From NCBI GenBank assembly GCA_024704765.1, contig JAKMXF010000255.1, forward strand, positions 1 through 64,000: a stretch of 64,000 bases of DNA, written 5' to 3'. This DNA comes from Oopsacas minuta. Taxonomy: Eukaryota > Animalia > Porifera. Positions 342-45,840 of this stretch are shown piece by piece; the stretch's first letter is position 1; each line of letters begins with the position of its first letter. The notes below the pieces were generated by a model. The model made no database searches. It had not been told where the DNA came from and saw only the letters and a list, made by a program, of their open reading frames with translations. The translations under genes were made by a program, and so were the position numbers.

Positions 342-3300
342 TCATTCATTAACTTTTCGTTTCTTTTTCGGATATCTCGTGTTCCCTTTAGCAGTTTCGT
401 TCCCCCGTTTAATTCCTGTATCTCCTTTCTGGGGGCTCTTCCTTCTAGAACTTTTCGTCTGTTGCAGAGAAGTAAACAAACTTTCAAATTGGTCCTTGAG
501 AGAATCGTTACTCTCAAAAAGATCCAAAAGACATTTGATTAAATCAGCGTCTCTGAGTACAGCCTGGAATTCTTCAGTCTTGCTCTGAACATTGCTAATA
601 TGCTTAACGGCTGATACAATTAACTCCAAGTCTGTGTCTTCATTAGCTACTATGTGTATCATAGAAGTGAGAGCTCTAGCAAGTGTGTCAGGTTCCTTGC
701 TAGTCCAGTGTAGCAGCAAGCTCTGTACACCTGAAGAATCTTGTAATGTTGTTAGCAGAGCTTTGAGAATTGGTCCCTCAGGGCTGTGCGGTTTGAGGTA
801 TAAAATTAGACTGGTTAGGGATTCGAATTGGTTCCCCGTTGGGCTGGAGAGATGAGACACGATCGGTAAGACATCTGTAACAGGAACACTCTCTGCTTCC
901 ATTAGCTTCCAAACACAAAATTGTTCAAAAGCTTCCCACTCCAAACTCGCTAATAATAGCTAAACGAAATTTATTACAGTAAATTCTCTATTTTTGTATT
1001 AAGAAATTGTAAAGGAACTTATTCGGATAAGACTTACAATAAGCTCTCGTTATAACCAAGTGCTCGAGACCCCAAGCGGAGTTACCAATTACTTTCGAGC
1101 TATAGAGGGTAAAGAATCACTTCGTTATAACAGGAGTTCACTGTTTCCCTATGGGTTACGTCTTATCCGAGAGTATTACTGTAGTTTTGAGATGTTACTT
1201 ACTTGTTCTGTATTAGTTTGACCGAATATACAAAATTCCTGCATTGTCAGCCCACATATTAGCTCGTAGAGGCTAGAAGGATCTAGATTAGCAACAACTA
1301 CTTTCAATACGTCACCGTTACCGACCATATGATCTGAACATTCTTTGTATAGCCTAGGCAACAACTTAAAGAATGTATCAATTGCCATTTCTGCACCTAA
1401 TGCGAGGTCTTTAACCAGCTGGTCTTTGCTGTCCTCCGTGCCAATGTAATCAAAGTATATCTTAAAATCTTCATTGTAAATTTCGGATAGAAATACTAGA
1501 AGAGTGAATCCAATAGCTGGGATGAATTTTGACATTTTCTGCGTTAGAGATAGGACGGTAGGATCCGCAATAGCTAGACGGAACAGGACAACCTGAGCGG
1601 AGGGAAGGAATGTATCAATCTCAGACAACTGACTGTCCTGTGAGAGAGGGAACATTGTCTCTTTCTCAAGTTGTGATGGATGAATTTCTGAAGAGAGTAG
1701 AGAAGACAGGAAAGTGGTTATTTGAGAAACAGACTCATCATCTAGTTTGCTGAACTCCACACTCTTTAGAAAAGTTTCCAATTCCTGAGGGAACTCTCCC
1801 AACCCCGAATAAGTTTTGAGAATATTTAGTTTGTCAGCGATATCTGGCTCCAGACATGAGAGTTCAAATACGGAACCGTCCTCAGAAAGAGGGGTCCCTA
1901 CAGGTTCATCTAACGCAGTATCGGGTACATCTTCTATCGTAGTAAGGTCTGATAGATCTGCTGGGGAGTCCAGAGGGGGCAAGGAGGGTGCTAATATGTC
2001 CAATTCATCTGGAGGTGTGAGAAGAGAGGGTTTAGGAGAGGAGATTTTCATCTCATCGTCTGAATCCGAAAACCTAAAAATCTATAAAAATCTTGTATTT
2101 ATAATAATTTGATTATCATAGCAACACATACGTAGCTTTGGTATCCTGATCAGAATCAATAATAATATCTTCTAGAATAGTAGGGAGAGAGTCTTCTATC
2201 TCTTGTTTGTAGTTTATGATAGTAGACGGTCCAGGAAGGGACATACGGACAATGTCCTCTGGTATCCCCTGTGGGGGTAGTTGGGAGGGAAGGATGCCCT
2301 CTCCCCCCGGGGGTCCTAAGAATTCAGGAAATTTCTGTCTAACCATAGCTCTTAAACTTGGATCAAGGAGAGGGTTCTCGAATAGATAAGATAGAGTCAT
2401 TACTACTTTCTTGTTAGTTATATCAGAGAATGCTGATTTGAAGCCTAAAGTGATTCCAGCAGCTATATAAACATGCCTAATTGTACAAATATGGTCCCAA
2501 ACCGCAAAGTAACATACTTTCACCGATTAAATCAAAGTAATTATGGCGGTGCCTTGAGCTTTGATATAACAGGAGTAGATTATACACTAAATATTCTTAA
2601 ACAAACCTTGTAACAACTTATCCTCAAGTCCTGGCATATACTCATCGATAATTTTACAAATAAACTCCAAGAGTGTACCAGCTATATTAGTATACGGCCT
2701 TACAGAATGATGCATTAGCAATATAGCAGGCTCTATATTCATTATCTTGTGTTGATCAGGGTCATATGCTAAATAGTCAAAGAATAGAGCTAGTCTAGCT
2801 TCTGCCATTGATGCGTTGGTAGCACATAGATTGTGTAGCCATCCTATTAATGCCCACCGTTGTACTACATCACTGCCTATTGAAACAAAGCATAATGATA
2901 ATTAACGGACCCCTGAGTGTTTCTTATTGCTTGTGAACTCAGGTAGATAATTGTACTAGTTATACACGCGGCGCTTCCAGCTGTTGTTCATATATGATTT
3001 TACAACCCCCTTGACATTGTACACTTACCAATGATCTCGTTTGGAGGATGAATAGCACAACAAATATACCGAATAATATCAGAAATAACGAATTGACTCT
3101 CTGGTGTTGATAAGTATTGTCTCTGGAACCATTCTTGATATCTACATAGTTTCAAAATATTTCGTAACTATGCACTCAATATAGAATTGAATATTTCAAA
3201 CCTTTTTTGCTGTCCAAACCTGACTTTATCAGCTAGGAACTTGAGCTTATTATCCATATCTGGGGTTATTCTGAGTGACACGTAGTGTTTATCGGTAGGG

Positions 3301-4537
3301 GAGCATAACAGCTGATATACACCAGTGAATGAGGGGTCGAGTGACGTAGGATCCTTAATTATATCCCCCCATAACTTATAGAACTCAGGAATAGCAGATA
3401 CGCTCTGTAGCAGTCGTAAGAGATCTCTCCCAATCATGAGGCAGTCATGGAACCTAGTAACAACAGTAATTTGTTTGTTTGTTTGTTTGTCTGTCTGTTT
3501 GTTGTCTGTCTGTCTGTCTGTCTGTCTAACCTGTGCCGAAGGAGACTAATACAAAAATCAACTTCATTTTGTCTAAGTCCATGTAAATGCACTGCATTAT
3601 GTTCAGCTATAAGTCTTAGATAAGTGTATAGAGCTGTTGACATTAAAATAGGTTGTGAAGATAGCCAAGTCTTGTTACCACAGAATAGCTGTAGCATACT
3701 ATCAGCTAACCAAATATTAGGATCAGAAATATCTCCAGATTGAATCTATGTAAACTATAATAATAAAGTCGAAACTCCCTCCGGAAGTGACTACCCTGAT
3801 CTCAGAAGATCGACTGTATTACAACCTAAAAAGGGAACTAGAGCTCACCTGTTTCAGAAGATTAACACATATCTTATCTACCCCAAGGACTTCTTTCCCT
3901 ACCATACGGTTAGTGACCCAGTACAGCTGTTCTCTGGGACTTGTGAGTAGTTTAGGAAACTTTTCTGTTATTATTAACTATAGAAAAGAGTATAAATATT
4001 ATTACAATTTATTGTAAAAAGTAACGAAAAGATTTCGCATTTTCAAGTTTTGCGACATTCCCAATTGTTCCCTACGCTATGCAATAAAAAATCCTTTCAA
4101 GTTATCCATGGTTAAAGTAACGCTACTACATACAGTCAGTTGTCTAATGAAGAAACTCATATTGTCTCTGTTCAGAACCAGGAGAGCATCACACCTCTTC
4201 GAAGCTGTTTGTTTATCCGTGAGAAGAGAGTATAACATAGCACAGCACACATTCTTGTAATCATCCATTGATTTGTGTACTACCTACATGATACAATGAT
4301 AATTACTCGTGTATGAATAAACATTTGTATTTGCTGTGTCACCTGGTATAGCATAGCATATTGTTCTCCTTCCTGTCCAGCTCCTTCATCAACCATGTGA
4401 CTAAATCGTTTAAAACATTCTTCCAGTTTCTTATCAATAGCATCCTTCTCATCTAGGATATCGTACTGGAACAGCTGACTATGAGGTACAGGTTGATCTG
4501 TTTGTGTTATACTACGCTCTGGGCCTTCTACTGACAT
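342..4537 (-). CDS. INTS3: Integrator complex subunit 3 (SOSS-A), multi-exon (about 10 exons)
   Basis: The ORF pieces carry INTS3 motifs in the expected order: ALYTYLRLIAEH..LRQNEVDFCISLLR, MIGRDLLRLLQSV..ITPDMDNKLKFLADKVRFGQQKR, ARLALFFDYL..IMNIEPAILLMHHS, FSDSDDE and LEWEAFEQFCVWKL. The junctions I checked (2133/2072 and 1202/960) are GT-AG and in phase. ATG at 4537, stop at 342. Confidence 0.93.
975..1183. mobile_element. Nested MITE: an outer TACAGTA...TACTGTA element containing an inner CGTTATAAC-family element at about 1035-1145
   Basis: The outer element has inverted termini (TACAGTAAATTCTC..TCGGATAAGAC / GTCTTATCCGAGAGTATTACTGTA). The inner segment is the reverse complement of the repeat at about 11295-11410. 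It lies in the last INTS3 intron. Confidence 0.65.
2478..2584 (-). mobile_element. MITE family A, partial copy in an INTS3 intron
   Basis: Matches the reverse complement of the family-A core (ctcctgttatatcaaagctcaagg..ataattact..ggtttgggaccatatttgtaca). Confidence 0.75.
3470..3527. repeat. (TGTT)n/(TGTC)n tetranucleotide microsatellite
   Basis: Read directly from the sequence; lies in an INTS3 intron. Confidence 0.9.
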
Positions 4538-5168: not shown

Positions 5169-8100
5169 TTAGACCTGTTTGTCATATGTGTCAGGTGAAA
5201 TCTCTGCTGCTTCTGGATTTAGTGGTGAGTCTGTTTGGGGAATATTAACAGGAGAATCTGTAAACAAACAAGTAACAAACAATAAAACAGCAAAACCGTA
5301 GCGAACATTCATGTAGAGATTGGAATTGTTTTGGGGGACATTTTACCTCATGTGTACGTAGCCTATTATTTACCTTGTGTCAGTATTATATCAGGTACTT
5401 GTGTGTTATCCTCACTAGTTTCTAAATCCATATCTACATCTTCATAGGTAACAACATTCTCAACATTACCTCCTTGTACAATATCAGGTGTATATAACTC
5501 AATGACGTCGCTATCTCCAATAGCTAAGTTTAATCCTTCTATATCCTCCAGCTGATCAGTACTACTGTCTGGAAATATAATAGCGGGGGTATTGTCATCC
5601 ATTTCCATCTCTCCAGCGATTTCATCATCATCTCCCTGGATCTGTTCTCCTGTATCCTTAACCTATAGTATATATATAGTGTGTACCAGGAGTTCACAAG
5701 ACCTCAAAATTTACATTGCAGTCTATGGGGTGGGGGGTGAAAAAGATGGAAACTACTCTATCAATGTATTTTGATAATTTAACCAAACATATGAGTTCAG
5801 GGACGAATGAAGGTGTTAAGCAGAGTCTCTTGTATGCTAATTAACATTAAAATTTCTACACAAACTGTATTAGGTTGTATCTGCATAAGATTGAGACTGT
5901 CAGTGAGTGAAATGCTTGGAGACTCATCTTTAGCTAGACTCAGAGCACTGCTTATCATATCTAGCCCTGTCTGACACTTAGGTTTCACGAATCGTCTGAA
6001 ATACAATATATAAAGTGTTAATAATTAAATGATACGAATAGAAAACACCTACCTTTCTTCTCCAACACTTCCTCTCACATCTTGATCATTGTCCTCCTTC
6101 AATGATTCCATTGTACGAGATAATCCTGTTGTGTTCTCAATCTCTTTCACCCATTCTGTAATTTACAAATAAATACAACATTCATAACATTGCATGACTA
6201 TTTGCCAATAAAGCCTGTTATATCAAAGTACCCGCTTACGTCAAAGTCTGAAATAATACAAATATAGTCCCAAACCGTCAGAGGTAACAAATATTCCATC
6301 GGTCATATCGAAGTAATTATCACAGTCCCTTGAACTTTGATATAACAGGAGTTTGGCTGTAGATTATTATATGTATGTACCTTCTGAGTTATAAATCTTG
6401 TAGAGAAGATGTCCAATAGTCAATCGAATGTTAGGAACTTTATCTTTAGCTAATGTCAGCAGATCTCTCATTAATTTCTCTGAAAATATTTCAATACTAA
6501 TACAAGTATCTTCTTCTTCTAATATTAACTGGCAAATCTTAACAAACCTACAAGAGAATTAGAATTCCATAAGCACCCTAAAATAAGGAGTAATTCAATA
6601 GATAATTCAATGAATGTGAATTAATAAGCTAGCTGGAATAATGATGTGAATCTTAGTAGAACTAACCTAAGTTATGCAATTTAGAATTACCGAATTAATT
6701 AGCATAGAATGGAGATACAAGCTAGTCAAATTAATAATCGATTCGAAAAACAACTCAAGTATTCTTGGAGATAATTACGTATCATAAGAACATACTGTAG
6801 TCTGTATATCCATTTGCCATCATGAGCAAATTCTGTAATAATCAGTTCAATAAGTCTATCAAAATACTCTCCATTGTCAGTATTGAATACATAATTCAGC
6901 ATAAACACTAGCTATAGAATAAACAACAAATAAATAAGGAATTTTTGAGGAAATGGGAAGAGTTAGAAATTTAAATTTGGTATGTGTGTAGAATGTGATC
7001 AGTTTAGGAAGGTGTTTTAATATCTAAGCGATATCTCAAAACCCTCTGAGCTTGTAACAAATAAATATATAAGGATATACTTACAATCTTAGAAGCTGAG
7101 TCCCTCACTTCAGAGACTGGGTCATGTCCTAATTCTAGCATTAATGGTTGGAAGTATTCTATACTCCTTTCTAAAGGAAACTGTTTCACCAATGGTATGA
7201 GTTGTCTACAAATAAAGTGATAATATAATCAAATATATGGTTAGCATAATGAATTCTCAGTTAAATTTACAGTGCAACTTCCATAGACGCCGAAAATGCT
7301 ATTTCTACCAATTCCCCGGTTATGGAGGTTCATTTTTAAGGGACTAAGAATTCGCTTTGTATATTTTTCACTCCGTTTCCAAATGCCCGGTTTATAGAGA
7401 TTCACTATTATAATAGTACTGACTCAGCAAATGCTAATCTATATCTCCAGTTGTTCTTATTGTCGGGGTTCTTCAAGCTAGGAAGAGTAGGTCCATACTT
7501 AAGGCAGATATCTCTAGGAAGAATCTACAGTAATTGAATTGAGTAATAATATCAGATGGTTAGTAAGCTAATTGATTATACCTTTAAGAACTCTCCAATA
7601 TGCAAGATAATCCCTGACTTGACTTCATCAATGTCTTTAAGGAATGTATCAAACACAGACAACAGATCTGTAGAGGTTATATCAGCTCCGTATATCTGAG
7701 CAAGGCAATGTAGCGAACAAGCTAGACACCTTCTAATCTTCCACTAAACAAAAGAATATACCGTTATATTGAAGCTCAACTTACTTCCATATAACCGAAG
7801 AGAATATGATACTTTGACGGATTGGGACCATATTTGTACCATTTTAGACTTCTATATAAGCGGGTATTATTCGATATCACGGGAGTTTACCTGTAATTCA
7901 GAAGCTAAGTTGATATAAAGAGATTTGATACAAGGCCAATTCTCTTTGCCTAGAGTTATAGCTACTCCAGGTAGAGAGTATGCACACTTCATAGGAAGAT
8001 CTGTATCCACATGCTGTATTTTCTTTTGATCTATCATTAGCAGATATTCTACCAGCAATTTTGGGGGAACTCGTTTCTATTAACAAACCAGGATTGATAA

Positions 8101-34909: not shown

Positions 34910-35087
34910 TACAGTCAACTCCCGCTATATCGAAGCTCAAGGGACCGCGATAATTACTTCAATAAAACCGATTAAATATGTGTGTTGTTTCGACGGTTTG
35001 GGACGATACGTGTTCGTACAATCCCAGACTTCGATACAAGCGGGTATTTCGGTATTTCCGTGTTCGATAAAACGGGAGATGACTGTA
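34910..35087 (+). mobile_element. Full-length MITE family A (TA target, Tc1/mariner-type termini)
   Basis: TA-CAGTCAACTCCCG...CGGGAGATGACTG-TA terminal inverted repeats flanked by TA, 178 bp, non-coding. At least 9 related copies occur in the window. Confidence 0.88.
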
Positions 35088-35129
35088 CACCAAATATTCT
35101 ATTACAATTATAAATTAGAGAAACATAAA

Positions 35130-36503
35130 ATGATGTCTCGATTTTCAATAATCCTAACAGTGTGTCTACTACCACATCTACTGAGTGCAGAGAACTTATT
35201 TATTAAACCAGATAGAGTCTCATGCAAGGGGGAGGAAATAAAAATGAGCTGCTATATAGAGCCTCCAACAGGGGAACAATTCTCCAATAAGGTACCATTG
35301 ATCTCTATTGACAATTCTGAACCATATACCAAAGATCAAATAAATTCTAACACTATCCCGCATCTAGACACCAGTGGATATCATATCGAGAAATTATCAA
35401 CAGTATCTCCACAAATTGCAGCCAGCATTACAATTACCAGTTTCGTCTCCAAGGATAGTGCAGTACTATTCGGTTGTCATGGTAGTTACATTAGCGGTAC
35501 AAATACTGAAGCACTAGCATCTGGGAACGCCCCTAGGCAAGCCAAGGTTCCAAATCAAATACTTTTCGACCTGTATGTTGACCTTATTTCTATCAGCGAT
35601 TGGTGCAGAGCTTTGGTCAGTATAAAATTCCTAGGCCCACCAGAAAGTGAACGTGCTATTGAATACTATCAGGTGTATGTTGATGGAGATCTTCAATCAG
35701 CAAATATAAGTAACGACACCGATTACTTCTATCCATCAGGTTTTTACTTAGATGTCAGTCCTGCCACTACCTATAGTATTGGCTTAGCAGCAGTTAGTTG
35801 TGCTGGCGCTGCTCCAAAGAGTCAGGATGATGTAGACATTTCTATCCCGAGTTATGAACTGGATTCGAATTTACGCTTCGAACTCGATTATTTTAATTCT
35901 CTGATTATTAATTGGGACTTCACAAAAGATCACGACATTCCTTTCGCCATAGGATATAGCTTAAAAGTAAACACTGCATTCAAAACTGATCTAGAGAGCA
36001 GTGTACTTACCCAGACGTTGAATTTCATACAAAGCTCTGCTGAAACTTCTTATTCATTCGATTTCGGGCTTAGCATAATCGGGGAGCAATCACTATACCT
36101 AGACATAACTGTTGACCTTGGGATAGTTTCTCAATGTCATGACGATAAATTCGCAGGGAATATAATAACAAACACCCAAACTAGTATTAGATCACATGTT
36201 GCACCTATTAATATCCCTTATAAGATTTCATGGATCGTAGTTGTAGTTGTCTCAGTAGCATTGGCAGTTTGTACCTGCAGTAATTATGTATCAATACTGA
36301 GCTTGCTGGTTATGTATTGTGAGAAGAAGAGAATAAATAGGAGAAATGCATACCATAATTTGATTCCAGAGGATAGGACTGAAACGAGCGCACCCCTTCT
36401 GAGCAGAATGGAAGTGCAAGAACCTACTTTACCAGCCCCTGGCTACTCAGTGAATACTGGTACTGCAGAGCAGCCGAGATATGGACCTGTTTATCACGAT
36501 TAA
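35130..36503 (+). CDS. Type I single-pass membrane protein (signal peptide, Ig-like and FN3-like ectodomain, Tyr-containing tail), intronless
   Basis: ATG at 35130 gives signal peptide MMSRFSIILTVCLLPHLLSA. Ig-like Cys pair (MSC..DSAVLFGC), FN3-like segment (IEYYQVYV..PATTYSIGLAAVSCAG), transmembrane segment WIVVVVVSVALAV..LLVMYC followed by KKRINRR. Confidence 0.75.
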   Translation: MMSRFSIILTVCLLPHLLSAENLFIKPDRVSCKGEEIKMSCYIEPPTGEQFSNKVPLISIDNSEPYTKDQINSNTIPHLDTSGYHIEKLSTVSPQIAASITITSFVSKDSAVLFGCHGSYISGTNTEALASGNAPRQAKVPNQILFDLYVDLISISDWCRALVSIKFLGPPESERAIEYYQVYVDGDLQSANISNDTDYFYPSGFYLDVSPATTYSIGLAAVSCAGAAPKSQDDVDISIPSYELDSNLRFELDYFNSLIINWDFTKDHDIPFAIGYSLKVNTAFKTDLESSVLTQTLNFIQSSAETSYSFDFGLSIIGEQSLYLDITVDLGIVSQCHDDKFAGNIITNTQTSIRSHVAPINIPYKISWIVVVVVSVALAVCTCSNYVSILSLLVMYCEKKRINRRNAYHNLIPEDRTETSAPLLSRMEVQEPTLPAPGYSVNTGTAEQPRYGPVYHD

Positions 36504-37212: not shown

Positions 37213-38631
37213 ATGGCCCCAATAACACCCAGCATATTTTATTTAATAACTCTCCTCTCCATCAATATCTTCTATTCTTATGCACCTTCAGCTCTAAACA
37301 CATTCACATTCAACCCACCTGAACCGCTATGCGTTGGGGAACAAGTAGTCATGAAATGCTCCATCGATTTATCGCCAAGCTCCCTCTACAGGGATATCTC
37401 ATCAGCTCTTATATCAATTAATGGGACTACTCCTATTTCAATCGAGCGATTCGGTGAACTAGCTACGATGGATGTAGATATATCAAGATATAGTGCTGAA
37501 TTTGTAACGAATAATCAAGGGCAAGATGATATCTCAGCTTTGATTACAATCGCAGGTTATCTTCCAATCGATTCTTCGATCGTATTCGGGTGTCATGGAT
37601 TATATATTAATTCTAGCTACACTCCAGCATTAGCCTTTGGATCTCCAACAACCGCATTAATACCCACTCCCCCTTCTCTTACCGACACGGGTCTGTCTAT
37701 TAACCCCAGTACATGTGAGACTGTTGTAACAACATACTTAATACCCCCGGATAGTTCTGACAGAGCTATAGAATCATACTCCCTATATCTTAACATGGTG
37801 TTAGTCCTCACTGTAGCTGTTGATAGTAACTTTAATGATGAACAAGAAATCAATACAAAGTTGAAGCTTAACAGAGAACATGTACTATCAGTTGTAGCCA
37901 TGAGCTGTGTAGGAAAATCTCCAACTTATACTCAGGTAATAGTAGAGCTTCCTTCCTACTTGTTCAAACCAGATAGTTTAGATTTTACGATAAATTCAGA
38001 AAATCAGCTGTTCATCAGCTGGGAGCTATCAGCTGATGATAAGTATGAGATTATCATGTCTTATGAAATGGAGTTAAAACTTAAAAATATCCCAGTAGGA
38101 CACCTTATAGCCCCGTCTCATGAAATTGCAATAAAAAGTGAATTCAGTCAAACCTCAAAACAAAATTCCTATACAGTAGATCTATCTCTACTCAACAGCA
38201 TTGATTTCCCTCTTAACATAAGCGTTACTCTACAAATAATATCCCGCTGTGAATACAATGCTACTGGAAAGAATAAAATCATTAAAGTGATACAATACAA
38301 TCTGCAATTGAATAATACAGACAGTGTATTGAGCGAGGAATCTCAGTCTATACCAGTCTACGGGACTGTTGTTATTGCTATTTTAGCGATTGCATTAGTA
38401 GGCTGTTTCATGGTAAATATACTCATTACCTTTCTGGTAATTAAGAGTTGTAAACCAAACTCAAAAGCAGAAAATCCTCAAATAATGAAGATGGATGAGG
38501 AAGTTTCGATTCGAAAAAATTCCAACAAACATACGATCGAAGAGGCGAATCAGCTATATACTTCCCCTAGAGATAACAATGATAGTAATAACAACCTGCT
38601 TTCTGATTCTAACTATTCCACAATTAATTAA
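37213..38631 (+). CDS. Tandem paralogue of the 35130-36503 receptor, intronless
   Basis: Signal peptide, VMKC..DSSIVFGCHGLY, SDRAIESY, VVAMSCVG, IISRC and transmembrane segment VVIAILAIALVGCFMVNILITFLVI. These motifs are collinear with the upstream gene. Confidence 0.75.
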   Translation: MAPITPSIFYLITLLSINIFYSYAPSALNTFTFNPPEPLCVGEQVVMKCSIDLSPSSLYRDISSALISINGTTPISIERFGELATMDVDISRYSAEFVTNNQGQDDISALITIAGYLPIDSSIVFGCHGLYINSSYTPALAFGSPTTALIPTPPSLTDTGLSINPSTCETVVTTYLIPPDSSDRAIESYSLYLNMVLVLTVAVDSNFNDEQEINTKLKLNREHVLSVVAMSCVGKSPTYTQVIVELPSYLFKPDSLDFTINSENQLFISWELSADDKYEIIMSYEMELKLKNIPVGHLIAPSHEIAIKSEFSQTSKQNSYTVDLSLLNSIDFPLNISVTLQIISRCEYNATGKNKIIKVIQYNLQLNNTDSVLSEESQSIPVYGTVVIAILAIALVGCFMVNILITFLVIKSCKPNSKAENPQIMKMDEEVSIRKNSNKHTIEEANQLYTSPRDNNDSNNNLLSDSNYSTIN

Positions 38632-38951: not shown

Positions 38952-41900
38952 TCAGATTTTCATAGCTACTTTTTGGGTTATATTTTTCTCCAAAAGCATT
39001 CTTTCATCATCATGCAGGTCACGTTTGTCCAAGGGATCTGATCCTTTCACGACTTCTAGGTTCTTGGATGTTTCCCGTAGTGGCCATTTAGTTCGTGTGT
39101 TGGAAGCACTAGTCGGCCTTTCTGGCTTGGATGCTGTTTGTTTCTGAGTGACGTCACTCGTGGCTGCACTCCCAGGCCTTACATGCTTCGTCACAATAGA
39201 TTCATTCTGTAGCCACATCTGTCTTGTGTCAGCTGTTTTCTTAGATAAAGTCTTCTCAACTTCTCTGTCTCTGATGTCAAATGTTTCCTGTTCGTTTGGT
39301 TTGCGAGTGGGAGAGCAGAACGGAGAGTTGCTGGGGCTGTTACTCTGACTCCGTAGCTTTACCTCAGTCCACGAGGGAGGAGAGGAGTTAGGAGTAACTC
39401 GGGGAGAGGGAGACTCACTTCCTGAATTTGAGCATTGTTTGAGTTTAGGAAATACGAAATGAGATGGCATAACAGCAACTACATGTCCTGCTGCTGAAGA
39501 TGATATGCTCGTTCTCTTGTTTGGTGTTTGTTCATGCTGTTTCTTCTGTTTGAGATCTGCATTCTTCCAGATTTGTTTTGTGTTTGTCACCTGTTGTATC
39601 AGCTGTTGTTCTGCCTCTCTATTACCACGGATATCCAGAATAGGCTTAGAATTGTCCGGCAAGGAAATATCCATAAAGGAATCCGAGGGAATCACAGATC
39701 CCACTTTATCAGCTGTTAATTGTACCGAAATATCTGAATTATCAGGTAATGATAAGGATTGATCAACGGTAGATGTGATAGGGGTTTCTCTTACAGAAAC
39801 AAGTTTAGGTATAAGAGGAGTGCTAGTGGTAACACTGTTACTAGACGGATTAGGTATAGTATACACGGTAGTTGTAGTAGTTGTAGTGTGTGCGTAAGCT
39901 TCGGGTTGTTTGAGTGAAGTATTAGGAGTAATAAATACGTCATTCTTGGGACTAGAAGATTCTAGTGAGAGGAAATCCTGACTGCTTGAACATTGTGAGT
40001 CTGTAGAACGATAAGGGGAGGAGGTGAGCCTTGGGGGAGACCATGGAGACTTGGAAAGAGGGTGTACAGCTTGCTCTAGAGGTGAGGTTATTCCATTGTT
40101 GACTATCTGTAGAGGAGATGGCCGTATTTGCATCGGCAATGGCTTGAATATTGAGTTTGGAGATTCGTTAGACTTGACAGAATTGCTCGGAAGTTTGGCC
40201 CTGACAGCAGGAGGAGATTGTGTCCATATCGGTGGGAAAGAATTGAACTTAACAAAATCAGATTTAGTCTCAGTGAAAGAAGCATTAAGATCTTCTGGTA
40301 TATTCTTAAGACTAGGAATAGCATCGTATATCTCTTTCTCAAAGAATCGTATATCTTTATGGTTAAATTTCTTGCTTTTCCTTCCATCTCCTGTCATTGA
40401 TAGTGAAGCTAGTTTATGACATACAGTATCTAATTTCCTCTCCAAACACTGGAAAGGTTTACTCAAATCAAATCCAAGATTCAACACTAACAAATCTTCC
40501 ATTATAGTCCATTGACATTGCATCATGAATTGTCTACCAGTTTGGAATTGCCATACACGATGATAGAATGCCTGACTAATCAGAGGTATTCTATAGTACT
40601 TCTCGTCTACAGAGTGCGACTGACAGTTCCTGAATATGTATATGATAAGTTCTAGAGTGTAACGGGAGTCCTCTAGTCCTACCTCCTGTACCAACATTTC
40701 TAACAGCTGTTTCAGGGTGTCTGTCACCTGTCGACTGAAAATGAACCCTCCAGATAGTTTGCTACGAGCCAAGGAGGTCGGAGATAACTTCTTTTCAATA
40801 ACCATTGGGCTATCCGTTCTTAATAATGACAAGTTTTCGCATGATGAGTTTTCTTTTCGTGGTTCCACCATTAATGAGTCAAAAGCTATCGTGAATGATC
40901 TCTCCCGTGAAGGATCAATAGGATTATCAGGTTTCGTTTCTGGTGTGTCTCTCTGTGTATATTTTCTAGAGGGACGGGATAGGCTAGGAGAGGGAGAGAG
41001 GTCTGTTGTTGAATTATCAGAAGCGAAGTCATCTAACTTTTCAAGTATAGAGCTTGATTGTGTTATAGGGAGTATATCTGGTGAACTAACTGATACTTCT
41101 GGGAAGAGAGAACTGTCTGATTTCAAGGATTCTAGCTCCTCAGGAATTGAAGAAATGTTAATAACCTCAGCTTTCAAATCTTTCTTCCTAAAGTTGTATA
41201 AATAGTATAAAAATAATTTGAACAAAAGCATGTGTGATATTTAATTTTACGTTTTCTTCTGCATGAATGAATTCAAGAATTTCTTAGCAGGACTGCTGAA
41301 TTTTCCAATAGACATCTCCTTATTCAGAGCTGGTTCCGAATAAGTCCTCTTCAATCCAACCGCAGGTACATTATCTATACCAGCAACAGGAGAAGCTATT
41401 CTATGTTGCTTTTTGTTGGTTAACTTCCGTATATGAGCTCTTCTAGAATGTCGTCTCTGAAGGGGTGAGGCGGCTTTTACAGTGTTTAATCCCCATTTTT
41501 CAATTTCATCTGGATCATCAGTATCATATAAATGTCTTATATCTCCAGCTACTAGCACCTGTTGATAATAGAAAACAGCCTTCAAGATTATGCCTCAATG
41601 CTACCAGATAATGCTGAAATAATCTCGTCAGCAAACCTCTGATACGAAACGAATTTTGTAAACTTAATATTTATCTCAAAATCTATTAATGATGAAAATT
41701 AATACGATTTTGCAGATAATTAGCTGATTGCTAATTTGATTCAAACATCATCAAATGCAAATACCATTACAACAGTTACGTAACCACGTGATAATGTGAT
41801 AATGTGATAATGAATACAGTTGTTGATTTATGTGATGCCATTAATGTATCATTGTTAATCAAGCAATTATTACCTCGTGAGATAAATTATATCTGGTATG

Positions 41901-44192
41901 CGGGTCGATAGAGTATTTTGCATAATTCTTGAGAAGTCTCTGTGGTGTAGTCTGTGACAACAGCTGTAAGATAGCCTCTCTCTCCTCCAGTAGCATGAGA
42001 GGATCGTACCCTTTCACATACCCTCTTATCATCCAGGCTGCATCAAACGCGCCCAGGAATCCCCTGGCTAATCCAGAGCCAGTGGGCCAGAAAGGCTCAA
42101 TGAGTGTGTCACCTGCAACGAGAAGAAGGAGAGATTTGCCTTTGCGTTTGATAATTTTACTCGCATGTTGTGAGGCGAAAAGAGATGTGAAGTCGAAGAG
42201 AGCGACATCATTCTCTCCCTATAGCAACCAGATATGATAATAGAAATGTTGCATTAGATAATTAGACATATTATTACACCAATTGTGACCCTAATCGACA
42301 ATAAACCTTCGATCCAAAAGACAATAAAATCGCACTTGAATAGACTAATTCTAAGTTAATGACTTAATCACATAATTCACGAATATTTGCAACTACAGTA
42401 CTAACCACTAATGATAACACAATAATGTGGATAGCTGAATGGAAGAATGGTGTGTTTATGAATGAATTATGTAAGTTCGTGTTTTGTGTAGTAATCTATA
42501 CAAATGTACCTGATGGGTTTTGGAGAACTCAAAATGCGGCATTTTCCCTTCAGTAGCGTATTTAGCCGATTCAATCGCGAAATTCTCCAGTTTCTTCTGA
42601 TTGATATTATGCGGGTCTGTTAACCTGATTGCATCTGAATAATCCTTCCTAAGAACTCCCTTCTTTATCAAGCTTTGTCTCTTAGCTGTCATTACGTAGT
42701 AGTGTGTCTCATCCTAGCAAATATTAATGATAATGCTTAGATGCAATTTCATATCTTCTAAGTGATAATCAATACAAGCAAAATCTTATCAGTTCAGATT
42801 GAATGAACAAGATATGCTCGTAACAGCCACGAAAAATCCAAATTACAAGTCTATACATTTTAAAACAAACTCAACCACTAAAATTTGTTAATACTTTCTA
42901 ATAATTACTGATAGTTTCACTGAATTTGTAAGTATCGGAAACTAGGATGTAACATAATTGGTACAGTAATGCAGTATAATTGTAGGCAGCAATTATTCGA
43001 GAGTATTTGTTATCTACTTTAGCTCAATCAGGAAAATGGGGAAATAGATCTGCAACTATAGTTACGTATTAATATCAATTTATCAGCTGGGTTTAATTTA
43101 AGTGCTAGAAAGCGCATTTACTGTCATTTATATTACCTTATAGTATACTATGTTCTCAAGGTCTATCCCGTGTTCTTTAGAGAGTTTCTTGAACCAATCT
43201 TGATGGTATGTGTATGAAATTCCTGAAATCTCAGAGACTTCATTCTCTTTTGGTGTATTCATATTGACAAAATTAAAACTTATCCCGATGGCTAGTTTTG
43301 CTCGAAATTCTTTCTTCTTAAAATCTAGAGTGTATTTCTTCCCATCAGCTGTTAGAATTACGTCATAAGTTCTAAAGTTTGCATCAGATAGACGGGGTTC
43401 ACATTGTACACCCCAGCCGTCCTCTTTTGATCTAGGTTCTGTGTATCGAATGAATTTTGTGTTATGGTAGATGTTAACACCTGTAAATGGTAAATAATTA
43501 ATAGTTTCACTTAATACAGACAATTATGCTACAAACTATATTGATGGAGGGAATCAGATAGAATATATGTTTGTTAAGATAACACTGATATCTCTAATCA
43601 CTAACTCACCTAGTATGAGACATATCTTCATTAGAATAACTTGAGCTGCTCTGATACAAATATGGTCCAGCTGTCCTGAACAGAACTTCCCATAGAACAT
43701 CTTAGCTTCCAATCCTTTAAGATCCTCGACTAGAAACGGCCATAAATGTAGACAGTTATTCCTTGAGAAACTATTTCTCATTTCAATTAGGTCCACCTTA
43801 GCTCCCATAAATGCGGCTTCTATTGCAAACCTCAGTCCTACTGGCCCTGCCCCTACGACTAATATTCTCTTCCCTTCACAAATACGCTCTTCTGTGTCTC
43901 CGAAGTATTCCCTGTGTTCTGGGAGACTCGAACGACCTAGTAGTGTCCGTAAAAGACGCTCTCCTTTCCATATTTTTGAGTCGGAAAGTCTCTCAGTAAA
44001 GAGACGTGCGTTTTCCGTCCAATTCGAGTCCTCAGGGATATTGTACTCTTGTCGTAACTGTGAATACAATTCCTGAATGGTGTCGATACTCTGTTCCGTA
44101 GCTGGACTGTCAATAAACGCTAACAACGAATCATCGCTTATACTCGATTGACTGTGAAGAGATGCTGTACTACCAGAATTTCCAAAATCCAT
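38952..44192 (-). CDS. MICAL: MICAL-family F-actin monooxygenase with a PUB-like domain and long S/P/T-rich tail (6 exons, about 1339 aa)
   Basis: Exons 44192-43610, 43480-43137, 42713-42510, 42218-41874, 41558-41251 and 41187-38952 are all GT-AG with phases 1,0,0,0,2 and total 4020 nt open. MICAL motifs: ILVVGAGPVGLRFAIE, FSRNNCLHLWPF, KFCSGQLDHICIR, LENIVYYK|DETHYYVMTAKRQSL, DVALFDFTS, VAGDTLIEPFWPTGSGLARGFLGAFDAAWM, YSIDPHTRY. Confidence 0.88.
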
Positions 44193-45471: not shown

Positions 45472-45840
45472 TTAAGTTGTACACTTCCAAACACAAATCC
45501 CAAGACTTCCTCCGAAGAAAATATACGTTATATGTTTCATAGTGTAGCTAATATCAAAACTGAATCCTTCACCTACTACAACACACCATGGAGGTCCGAA
45601 TTTCTTATCCATACTCTCCTTTATCATTTTAGCTGCATTCTCATTATTAGAAGAAAACTTCTCACAAGCTGTTACCGATATCTCCATTGCTTCAGTTAAC
45701 ATATCTTCATTCATGTCTGAGTACTTAACAAGAGCGTAGTTGTGCTGTCGCCTGAAATCCCCCTCGTCTGTCTGTGGAGCTACAGGCTCAGTAGTAGTTC
45801 CTTCTGGAGGTTGTGCTGGAGCAGTCTCTGGTTCTGTCAT
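45472..45840 (-). CDS. DNAL4: Dynein axonemal light chain 4, intronless
   Basis: YALVKYSDMNEDMLTEAMEISVTACEKFSSNNENAAKMIKESMDKKFG..WCVVVGEGFSF..FFGGSLGICVWKC. Confidence 0.92.
   Translation of the reverse strand: MTEPETAPAQPPEGTTTEPVAPQTDEGDFRRQHNYALVKYSDMNEDMLTEAMEISVTACEKFSSNNENAAKMIKESMDKKFGPPWCVVVGEGFSFDISYTMKHITYIFFGGSLGICVWKCTT

Follow-up and report, generated by a model that had tools for sequence, protein, structure and literature searches.

A MICAL-type monooxygenase from the glass sponge Oopsacas minuta carries a divergent PUB domain and lacks CH, LIM and bMERB domains

The glass sponge Oopsacas minuta encodes a 1339-residue MICAL-type enzyme, here called MICAL-PUB, in one expressed and conserved gene. 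The gene occupies positions 44192 to 38952 on the minus strand of the window, which is the 64,000-nucleotide (nt) stretch from position 1 of contig JAKMXF010000255.1. The N-terminal part of the protein is a MICAL monooxygenase, and the long tail contains a divergent PUB domain but none of the CH, LIM and bMERB domains of known MICALs. We propose, with a probability of roughly 0.6, that MICAL-PUB is a MICAL in which a non-canonical, SPATA2-like PUB domain serves as a docking module and from which the CH, LIM and bMERB domains are absent.

MICAL-PUB is built from six minus-strand exons (44192-43610, 43480-43137, 42713-42510, 42218-41874, 41558-41251 and 41187-38952) that concatenate to 4020 nt and give 1339 codons plus one terminal stop in a frame that is open throughout. 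The TGA stop is located at 38952-38954 and is directly followed by a TAA. The five introns (129, 423, 291, 315 and 63 nt) all have GT-AG ends and a pyrimidine-rich stretch before the AG. Exon 1 (residues 1-194) starts with the start codon at 44192, contains the flavin adenine dinucleotide (FAD)-binding Rossmann fold and ends in phase 1. Exon 2 (residues 195-309) encodes the ADG motif as well as the beginning of the MICAL Rossmann insert, which continues in exon 3 (residues 310-377). Exon 4 (residues 378-492) is followed by exon 5 (residues 493-595), which completes the monooxygenase domain, continues into a basic linker and ends in phase 2. Exon 6 (residues 596-1339 and the stop) encodes a Ser/Pro-rich linker, the PUB domain and the long low-complexity tail. 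An earlier note on this DNA had claimed that separate open reading frames (ORFs) and an exon unlisted as an ORF, at 42218-41874, are spliced through GT-AG sites into a single gene with one open 1339-codon frame. The exons join as it described, the unlisted exon matches MICAL structures, and the single gene is borne out by spliced transcript contigs and by an intron whose phase is conserved in four other genomes.

The splicing of MICAL-PUB was assessed in four runs of one sample (X1-X4), none of which is recorded as RNA; X4 was taken as RNA from its depth pattern. In the DNA runs X1-X3, coverage is even over exons and introns, and no joints appear. The X4 depths reach thousands in the exons, compared with 6.5, 0 and 9.9 in the three bins that are wholly intronic, and coverage is unbroken across exon 6. 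The joints of the X4 contigs are located at 41186/41250 (63 nt skipped), 42217/42509, 42712/43136 and 43477/43607, and the skipped stretches (41187-41249 (+1), 42218-42508, 42713-43135 and 43478-43606 (+3)) have CT..AC ends on the plus strand, which correspond to GT..AG on the gene strand. The shorter side of each joint comprises 20-26 letters, which is weak taken singly; the coincidence of four joints with predicted GT-AG pairs is beyond chance. The 41251/41187 junction between exons 5 and 6, for which the earlier note had proposed a transcript check, is found in a contig of depth 3813 that skips exactly these 63 nt, and the depths of the other joints range from 1874 to 4297. The exon 4/5 junction has no listed joint and is represented by loose ends at 41560 and 41872 that hold the bases of the exon 4 end and the exon 5 start. 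Thus, a run with the behaviour of RNA-seq contains spliced forms of all five junctions, including 41251/41187. X4 also contains low-depth (6-10) contigs at 41531-41901 and 42686-43165 that pass unspliced through introns 4 and 2, each differing from the window by one base; they may represent pre-mRNA or traces of DNA, possibly from another allele.

The gene is conserved beyond O. minuta. A word search recovered seven orthologous tail ORFs that are 69-80% identical over the domain, and eight orthologues were used in the comparisons below, with four loci (L001-L004) examined for gene order and introns. Gene order is identical in L001-L004, where a DHHC-ankyrin gene, a dynein light chain gene, the Rossmann/MICAL exons and the tail ORF follow one another, and the downstream neighbour gene lies on the opposite strand in the window and in the orthologous loci. 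A tblastn search with the window gene model recovered every exon, in order, in the orthologous loci, and the orthologous proteins share the same conserved C-terminal end. The intron between exons 5 and 6 is homologous and in phase 2 in L001-L004 (269, 55, 65 and 59 nt, respectively); each boundary combines a TAG acceptor with either GTAAGT or GTATGT as the donor, and the frame stays open. In the most distant orthologue, L001, one tblastn alignment (5978-6595; 618 nt for 184 residues) spans both exon 3 and exon 4, between which the intron may have been lost or be very short.

Could the monooxygenase and the PUB domain nevertheless belong to two adjacent genes? The 63-nt intron 5 (41188-41250) contains a TAA at 41247-41249, at which a stand-alone monooxygenase ORF would terminate, and an ATG at 41231, which starts a mechanical ORF of 759 amino acids (aa). 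A monooxygenase-only MICAL that ends at the 41247 stop and a separate PUB-tail gene that begins at ATG 41231 would account for both signals, and the contig across the exon 5/6 joint has only 20 letters on its shorter side. However, the joint falls exactly at the frame-restoring GT-AG pair with a depth resembling that of the other joints, the same phase-2 intron occurs in four other genomes, and ATG 41231 is not conserved, with the orthologous ORFs starting at different, non-homologous places. Because the intron is conserved and ATG 41231 is intronic and unconserved, we consider two genes highly improbable and reject this arrangement.

The N-terminal region of MICAL-PUB shares with MICAL1, MICAL2, MICAL3 and Drosophila Mical a monooxygenase with GxGxxG, ADG and GD/EPFWPxGxGxxRGF motifs and a Rossman_Mical insert. 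The FAD motif GAGPVG (residues 114-119; 43836-43853) in exon 1 is accompanied by a Pyr_redox_2 match (E = 4.5e-6) and is aligned to GAGPCG of MICAL3. Exon 1 matches the structures of MICAL3 (6ICI; E = 2e-33) and MICAL1 (E = 5e-31) by sequence. Exon 2 and exon 3 match positions 1-53 (E = 2e-20) and 54-120 (E = 1.6e-23) of the Rossman_Mical profile PF25413, with scores of 73.6 and 83.6 bits against a cut-off of 27, and the two profile halves meet exactly at the exon 2/3 splice. Exon 4 matches residues 398-507 of MICAL3 (E = 8e-37) and residues 357-466 of MICAL1 (E = 3e-35). Its GD motif and EPFWPxGxGxxRGF block are intact, with GD...EPFWPTGSG running from residue 412 (GD / EPFWPTGSGLARGF; 42072-42116), in line with the earlier claim that the FAD motif and the C-terminal MICAL motifs are preserved. 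MICAL3 and MICAL1 are the only strong sequence matches of exons 1 and 4 in the PDB (E = 1e-30 to 8e-37), and the best-matching entries for the monooxygenase are 6ICI, 2BRY and 8Y6K. Since exon 4 aligns to MICAL1 residues 357-466, the monooxygenase domain ends early in exon 5. As judged from these matches, residues 1 to ~505 are a complete MICAL-type FAD/NADPH (reduced nicotinamide adenine dinucleotide phosphate) monooxygenase, and its family membership makes F-actin methionines the most likely substrate.

The C-terminal ~830 residues of MICAL-PUB are mostly of low complexity and comprise one folded module together with a number of short conserved motifs. The best-conserved part of the tail (exon-6 residues 134-309, ~170 aa), with a mean column identity of 87% compared with 66% overall, includes the region that the earlier note had described as PUB-like, and the folded domain is placed there at 40383-40745 (residues 743-863). 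The note had also proposed a hidden Markov model search with Pfam PF09409 and a structure prediction. In the Pfam search, exon 6 scores 18.4 bits and the excised region up to 21.7 bits; all eight orthologues stay below the threshold of 34.3 and give a weak match, with PUB as the sole family matched. A search of 1.84 billion representative proteins with a profile of the eight orthologues retrieved 27 at E ≤ 1e-3 (best E = 3e-13), one of which is the clade's own cluster. Among the other 26, 20 were scanned, and all 20 carry a Pfam PUB domain (45-88 bits). When the clade alignment was compared with those PUB domains using hhalign, the probability was 99.4% (E = 7e-22) over 109 columns. In a language-model Atlas search, PUB clusters accounted for 34 of the 40 neighbours.

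The predicted structure agrees with the sequence comparisons. An AlphaFold2 model obtained with a 32-sequence alignment has a predicted local distance difference test score (pLDDT) of 93.9 and a predicted template modelling score (pTM) of 0.87, and it adopts a PUB fold. All of the first 25 Foldseek matches are PUB domains, as are the top 20 matches in a structural comparison (Z = 8.8-13.7; next match, Z = 6.5). The closest structure is the PUB domain of mouse PNGase (2HPL; Z = 13.7), with a root-mean-square deviation of 1.6 Å over 97 of 100 residues. A first prediction from a 176-aa construct and eight close orthologues gave a pLDDT of 42 and was discarded. A phmmer search of the PDB with the single PUB-region sequence returned no match, and the narrow eight-sequence profile produced chance-level matches only; PUB structures were matched only after bona fide PUB relatives had entered the profile. 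Taken together, the profile matches and the model leave little doubt that residues 743-863 form a genuine, if divergent, PUB domain.

The proteins closest in sequence to this domain (P0008-P0033; E = 3e-13 to 1e-3) are small PUB proteins and PUB-ankyrin-death-domain proteins. The K-V-W-Q-Y and G-W motifs of the sponge domain recur in them, and most have Ile at the first pocket position. In contrast, they keep the K/R..N residues and score well above the Pfam threshold, and none of them carries a monooxygenase domain. The PUB-ankyrin-death-domain architecture is found among P0008, P0009, P0022, P0024 and P0026, and one 519-aa protein has two PUB stretches.

What does the PUB domain of MICAL-PUB bind? 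The p97-binding pocket for the PUB-interacting motif (PIM) consists of YxxN(x)9Y plus K/RxxN; both tyrosines stack on Tyr805 of p97, the first Asn hydrogen bonds with the Tyr805 hydroxyl, and the K/R residue and the second Asn hold the free carboxylate at the C-terminus of p97 (PMC6995525). UBXD1 binds with an affinity of 14 µM, which changes to 111 µM in Y181A (8-fold weaker), 64 µM in N201A (5-fold), 280 µM in N201D and 49 µM in K198E (3.5-fold weaker than the 14 µM, which is already weak), and mutation of PNGase R55 abolishes p97-PIM binding (PMC6995525). HOIP Asn102, the equivalent of the K/RxxN Asn, is a cornerstone of the interaction, and N102D or N102Q abolishes PIM binding (PMC4017264). 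SPATA2 has a PUB domain without the first tyrosine, which binds no known PIM and docks the USP domain of CYLD (PMC6995525).

The pocket positions of the sponge domain were assigned in a profile alignment that contained UBXD1, PNGase and the sponge sequence. Asn782 (UBXD1 N184, PNGase N41) and Tyr792 (UBXD1 Y194, PNGase Y51) are retained, whereas Ile779 replaces the first tyrosine (UBXD1 Y181, PNGase Y38), Pro796 replaces the basic residue (UBXD1 K198, PNGase R55) and Ser799 replaces the second Asn (UBXD1 N201, PNGase N58). The core thus reads I779-x-x-N782-(x)9-Y792 and the clamp P796-x-x-S799, and neither conforms to its canonical pattern. Ile779 and Pro796 are invariant in eight of eight orthologues, with Ser or Gly at position 799; Asn782, Lys791 and Tyr792 are equally invariant. 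The loss of the clamp is specific to this clade, because the nearest PUB relatives keep K/R..N. The earlier note had claimed that the p97-contacting N, K and Y residues are kept and that the enzyme could be coupled directly to p97. The first claim holds for Asn782, Lys791 and Tyr792 but leaves out the three substituted positions, and the second is disfavoured by a pocket that lacks the first tyrosine and both K/RxxN residues.

A PUB domain that binds the C-terminal PIM of p97/VCP (D-D-L-Y-G) would couple actin oxidation to the segregase or subject the enzyme to regulation by p97. The fold most resembles that of the PNGase PUB domain, itself a p97 binder, and the three conserved pocket residues could be taken to point in this direction. 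However, all of the orthologues have Ile in place of the first pocket tyrosine and Pro...Ser/Gly in place of K/RxxN, and mutations at the equivalent PNGase and UBXD1 positions (PMC6995525) and at HOIP Asn102 (PMC4017264) weaken or abolish binding, while SPATA2, which lacks the same tyrosine, binds no PIM (PMC6995525). We therefore regard p97 binding as unlikely. The sponge domain resembles the PUB domains of PNGase and UBXD1/UBXN6 in its modelled four-helix bundle and small three-stranded sheet, in the N(x)9Y part of the pocket and in the EKY motif, and it differs from them in the Ile at the first tyrosine, the P..S/G in place of the K/RxxN clamp and its score under the Pfam gathering threshold. 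The SPATA2 PUB domain, in turn, is extended with extra helices and is part of an adaptor rather than an enzyme, and the comparisons made here gave it no closer sequence relationship to the sponge domain than other PUB domains have.

The sponge protein differs from MICAL1, MICAL2, MICAL3 and Drosophila Mical in that it has a PUB domain and no CH, LIM or bMERB/ERM-alpha-like domain. In bilaterian MICALs, these three domains serve in targeting and autoinhibition. Pfam searches of exons 5 and 6 at E ≤ 1 detected no CH, LIM or bMERB/ERM-alpha-like domain, and the C-terminal 248 residues of seven orthologues gave no Pfam match of any kind. A tail profile searched against the PDB, including full-length MICAL1, matched neither bMERB nor any other structure. 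Such domains cannot be concealed in the introns because the introns are too short, and the absence claimed in the earlier note is thus upheld. MICAL autoinhibition is relieved by Rab or plexin (PMC9982024), and this mode of release cannot work alike in the sponge protein since CH, LIM and bMERB are absent.

Autoinhibition by the C-terminus is a requirement of canonical MICALs, and forms that lack it are harmful through constitutive activity (PMC9982024). This requirement raises the prospect that the PUB domain takes the place of bMERB by acting in cis, folding onto the monooxygenase or onto a motif in the segment that follows it, with release by a partner or by tyrosine phosphorylation. The conserved post-PUB segment (residues 864-905; 40257-40382) contains the near-invariant F-E-K-E-I-Y-D-A-I-P-S-L-K, within which E-I-Y (residues 879-881) forms a PIM-like acidic-hydrophobic-Tyr core, and the invariant E-I-Y-D motif is located 17 residues past the last PUB helix. 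Cis autoinhibition is conceivable because this PIM-like motif lies just past the PUB domain, and the conserved block of ~170 aa exceeds the length of the PUB fold. However, no cis contact is visible, because the longer construct folded at low confidence (pLDDT 42). The pocket substitutions also disfavour an internal PIM, since HOIP Asn102 is needed for internal PIMs too. Autoinhibition in cis seems to us rather improbable.

We thus favour the docking-module reading. The N-terminal monooxygenase would, by homology, most likely oxidise F-actin methionines, and the PUB domain would most likely be a protein-docking or regulatory module with a non-canonical ligand, comparable to the PUB domain of SPATA2, and not a receptor for the p97 tail. 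Together with the short conserved motifs of the disordered tail, this module may set the location or activity of the enzyme. Several points weigh against this proposal. The retained Asn782 and Tyr792 and the hydrophobic floor of the pocket may still permit a weak or altered PIM-type interaction, and Tyr778, which immediately precedes the position of the canonical tyrosine, might take over part of its role. Since the alignment behind the AlphaFold2 model included true PUB sequences, the fold match does not count as evidence separate from the sequence homology. The RNA nature of X4 follows from the exon/intron depth pattern and not from the run record. Retention of intron 5 would yield a monooxygenase-only product of 595 residues, and the contigs give no retained share. 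Finally, the docking role and the loss of canonical p97 binding are both read from sequence comparison.

Beyond the PUB domain, the C-terminal tail (residues 1092-1339; 38955-39698) contains conserved short motifs, and its last ~30 residues are conserved among the orthologues. Two copies of a helix-like motif, R-[ED]-x-E ... T-[KR]-Q-[IM]-W, lie on the minus strand (39552-39674 and 39192-39269), at residues ~1110-1135 and ~1228-1253, with T-[KR]-Q-[IM]-W at residues 1131 and 1249. Both copies are conserved, and neither corresponds to a known domain by Pfam or PDB profile searches.

The neighbourhood of the gene contains further conserved features. Directly upstream lies a single-exon gene for an LC8-type dynein light chain (45472-45840, minus strand; Pfam Dynein_light) with an N-terminal extension of ~35 residues rich in Pro, Thr and Glu; it is syntenic in four of four examined loci. 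Convergent to the MICAL-PUB gene are tandem single-exon ORFs of 440-510 aa on the plus strand (34980-36503 and 37213-38631). Matching convergent ORFs occur in L001 (10585-13848) and L002 (10693-16899) and have no precomputed Pfam match. The 472-aa convergent ORF is a possible membrane protein because it has a hydrophobic leader-like start and a hydrophobic stretch near the C-terminus, and the tandem ORFs look like a small lineage-specific family of surface proteins.

In the databases searched, MICAL exons together with this PUB type were found only in eight related genomes, and the profile search of 1.84 billion proteins yielded no protein longer than 690 aa with this PUB type. Our literature search on MICAL with PUB, sponges or hexactinellids found no description of a MICAL-PUB architecture, and the supplements of the Oopsacas genome paper, as far as they were accessible, do not mention MICAL. 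To date, the architecture is known from a single sponge clade only.

To our knowledge, MICALs are the only enzymes that disassemble F-actin by direct stereospecific oxidation, and all that we know of their control rests on the CH-LIM-bMERB tail. The value of the sponge protein is moderate, given that its pocket residues disfavour p97 coupling and that it comes from one sponge clade so far. A more far-reaching view, which we consider a long shot, is that MICAL control has been rewired, such that the actin oxidase is tied through its PUB domain to the ubiquitin/p97 machinery or to a phospho-switched PIM-like Tyr motif instead of Rab/plexin-bMERB release; if true, oxidative actin disassembly would be coupled to the extraction or turnover of proteins in the syncytial glass-sponge tissue. 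MICAL-PUB keeps the catalytic domain, and its whole regulatory part is replaced by a PUB domain and disordered sequence. It suggests that the control of a MICAL monooxygenase can follow another logic, and it provides a compact system in which to look for the ligand of a non-PIM PUB domain.

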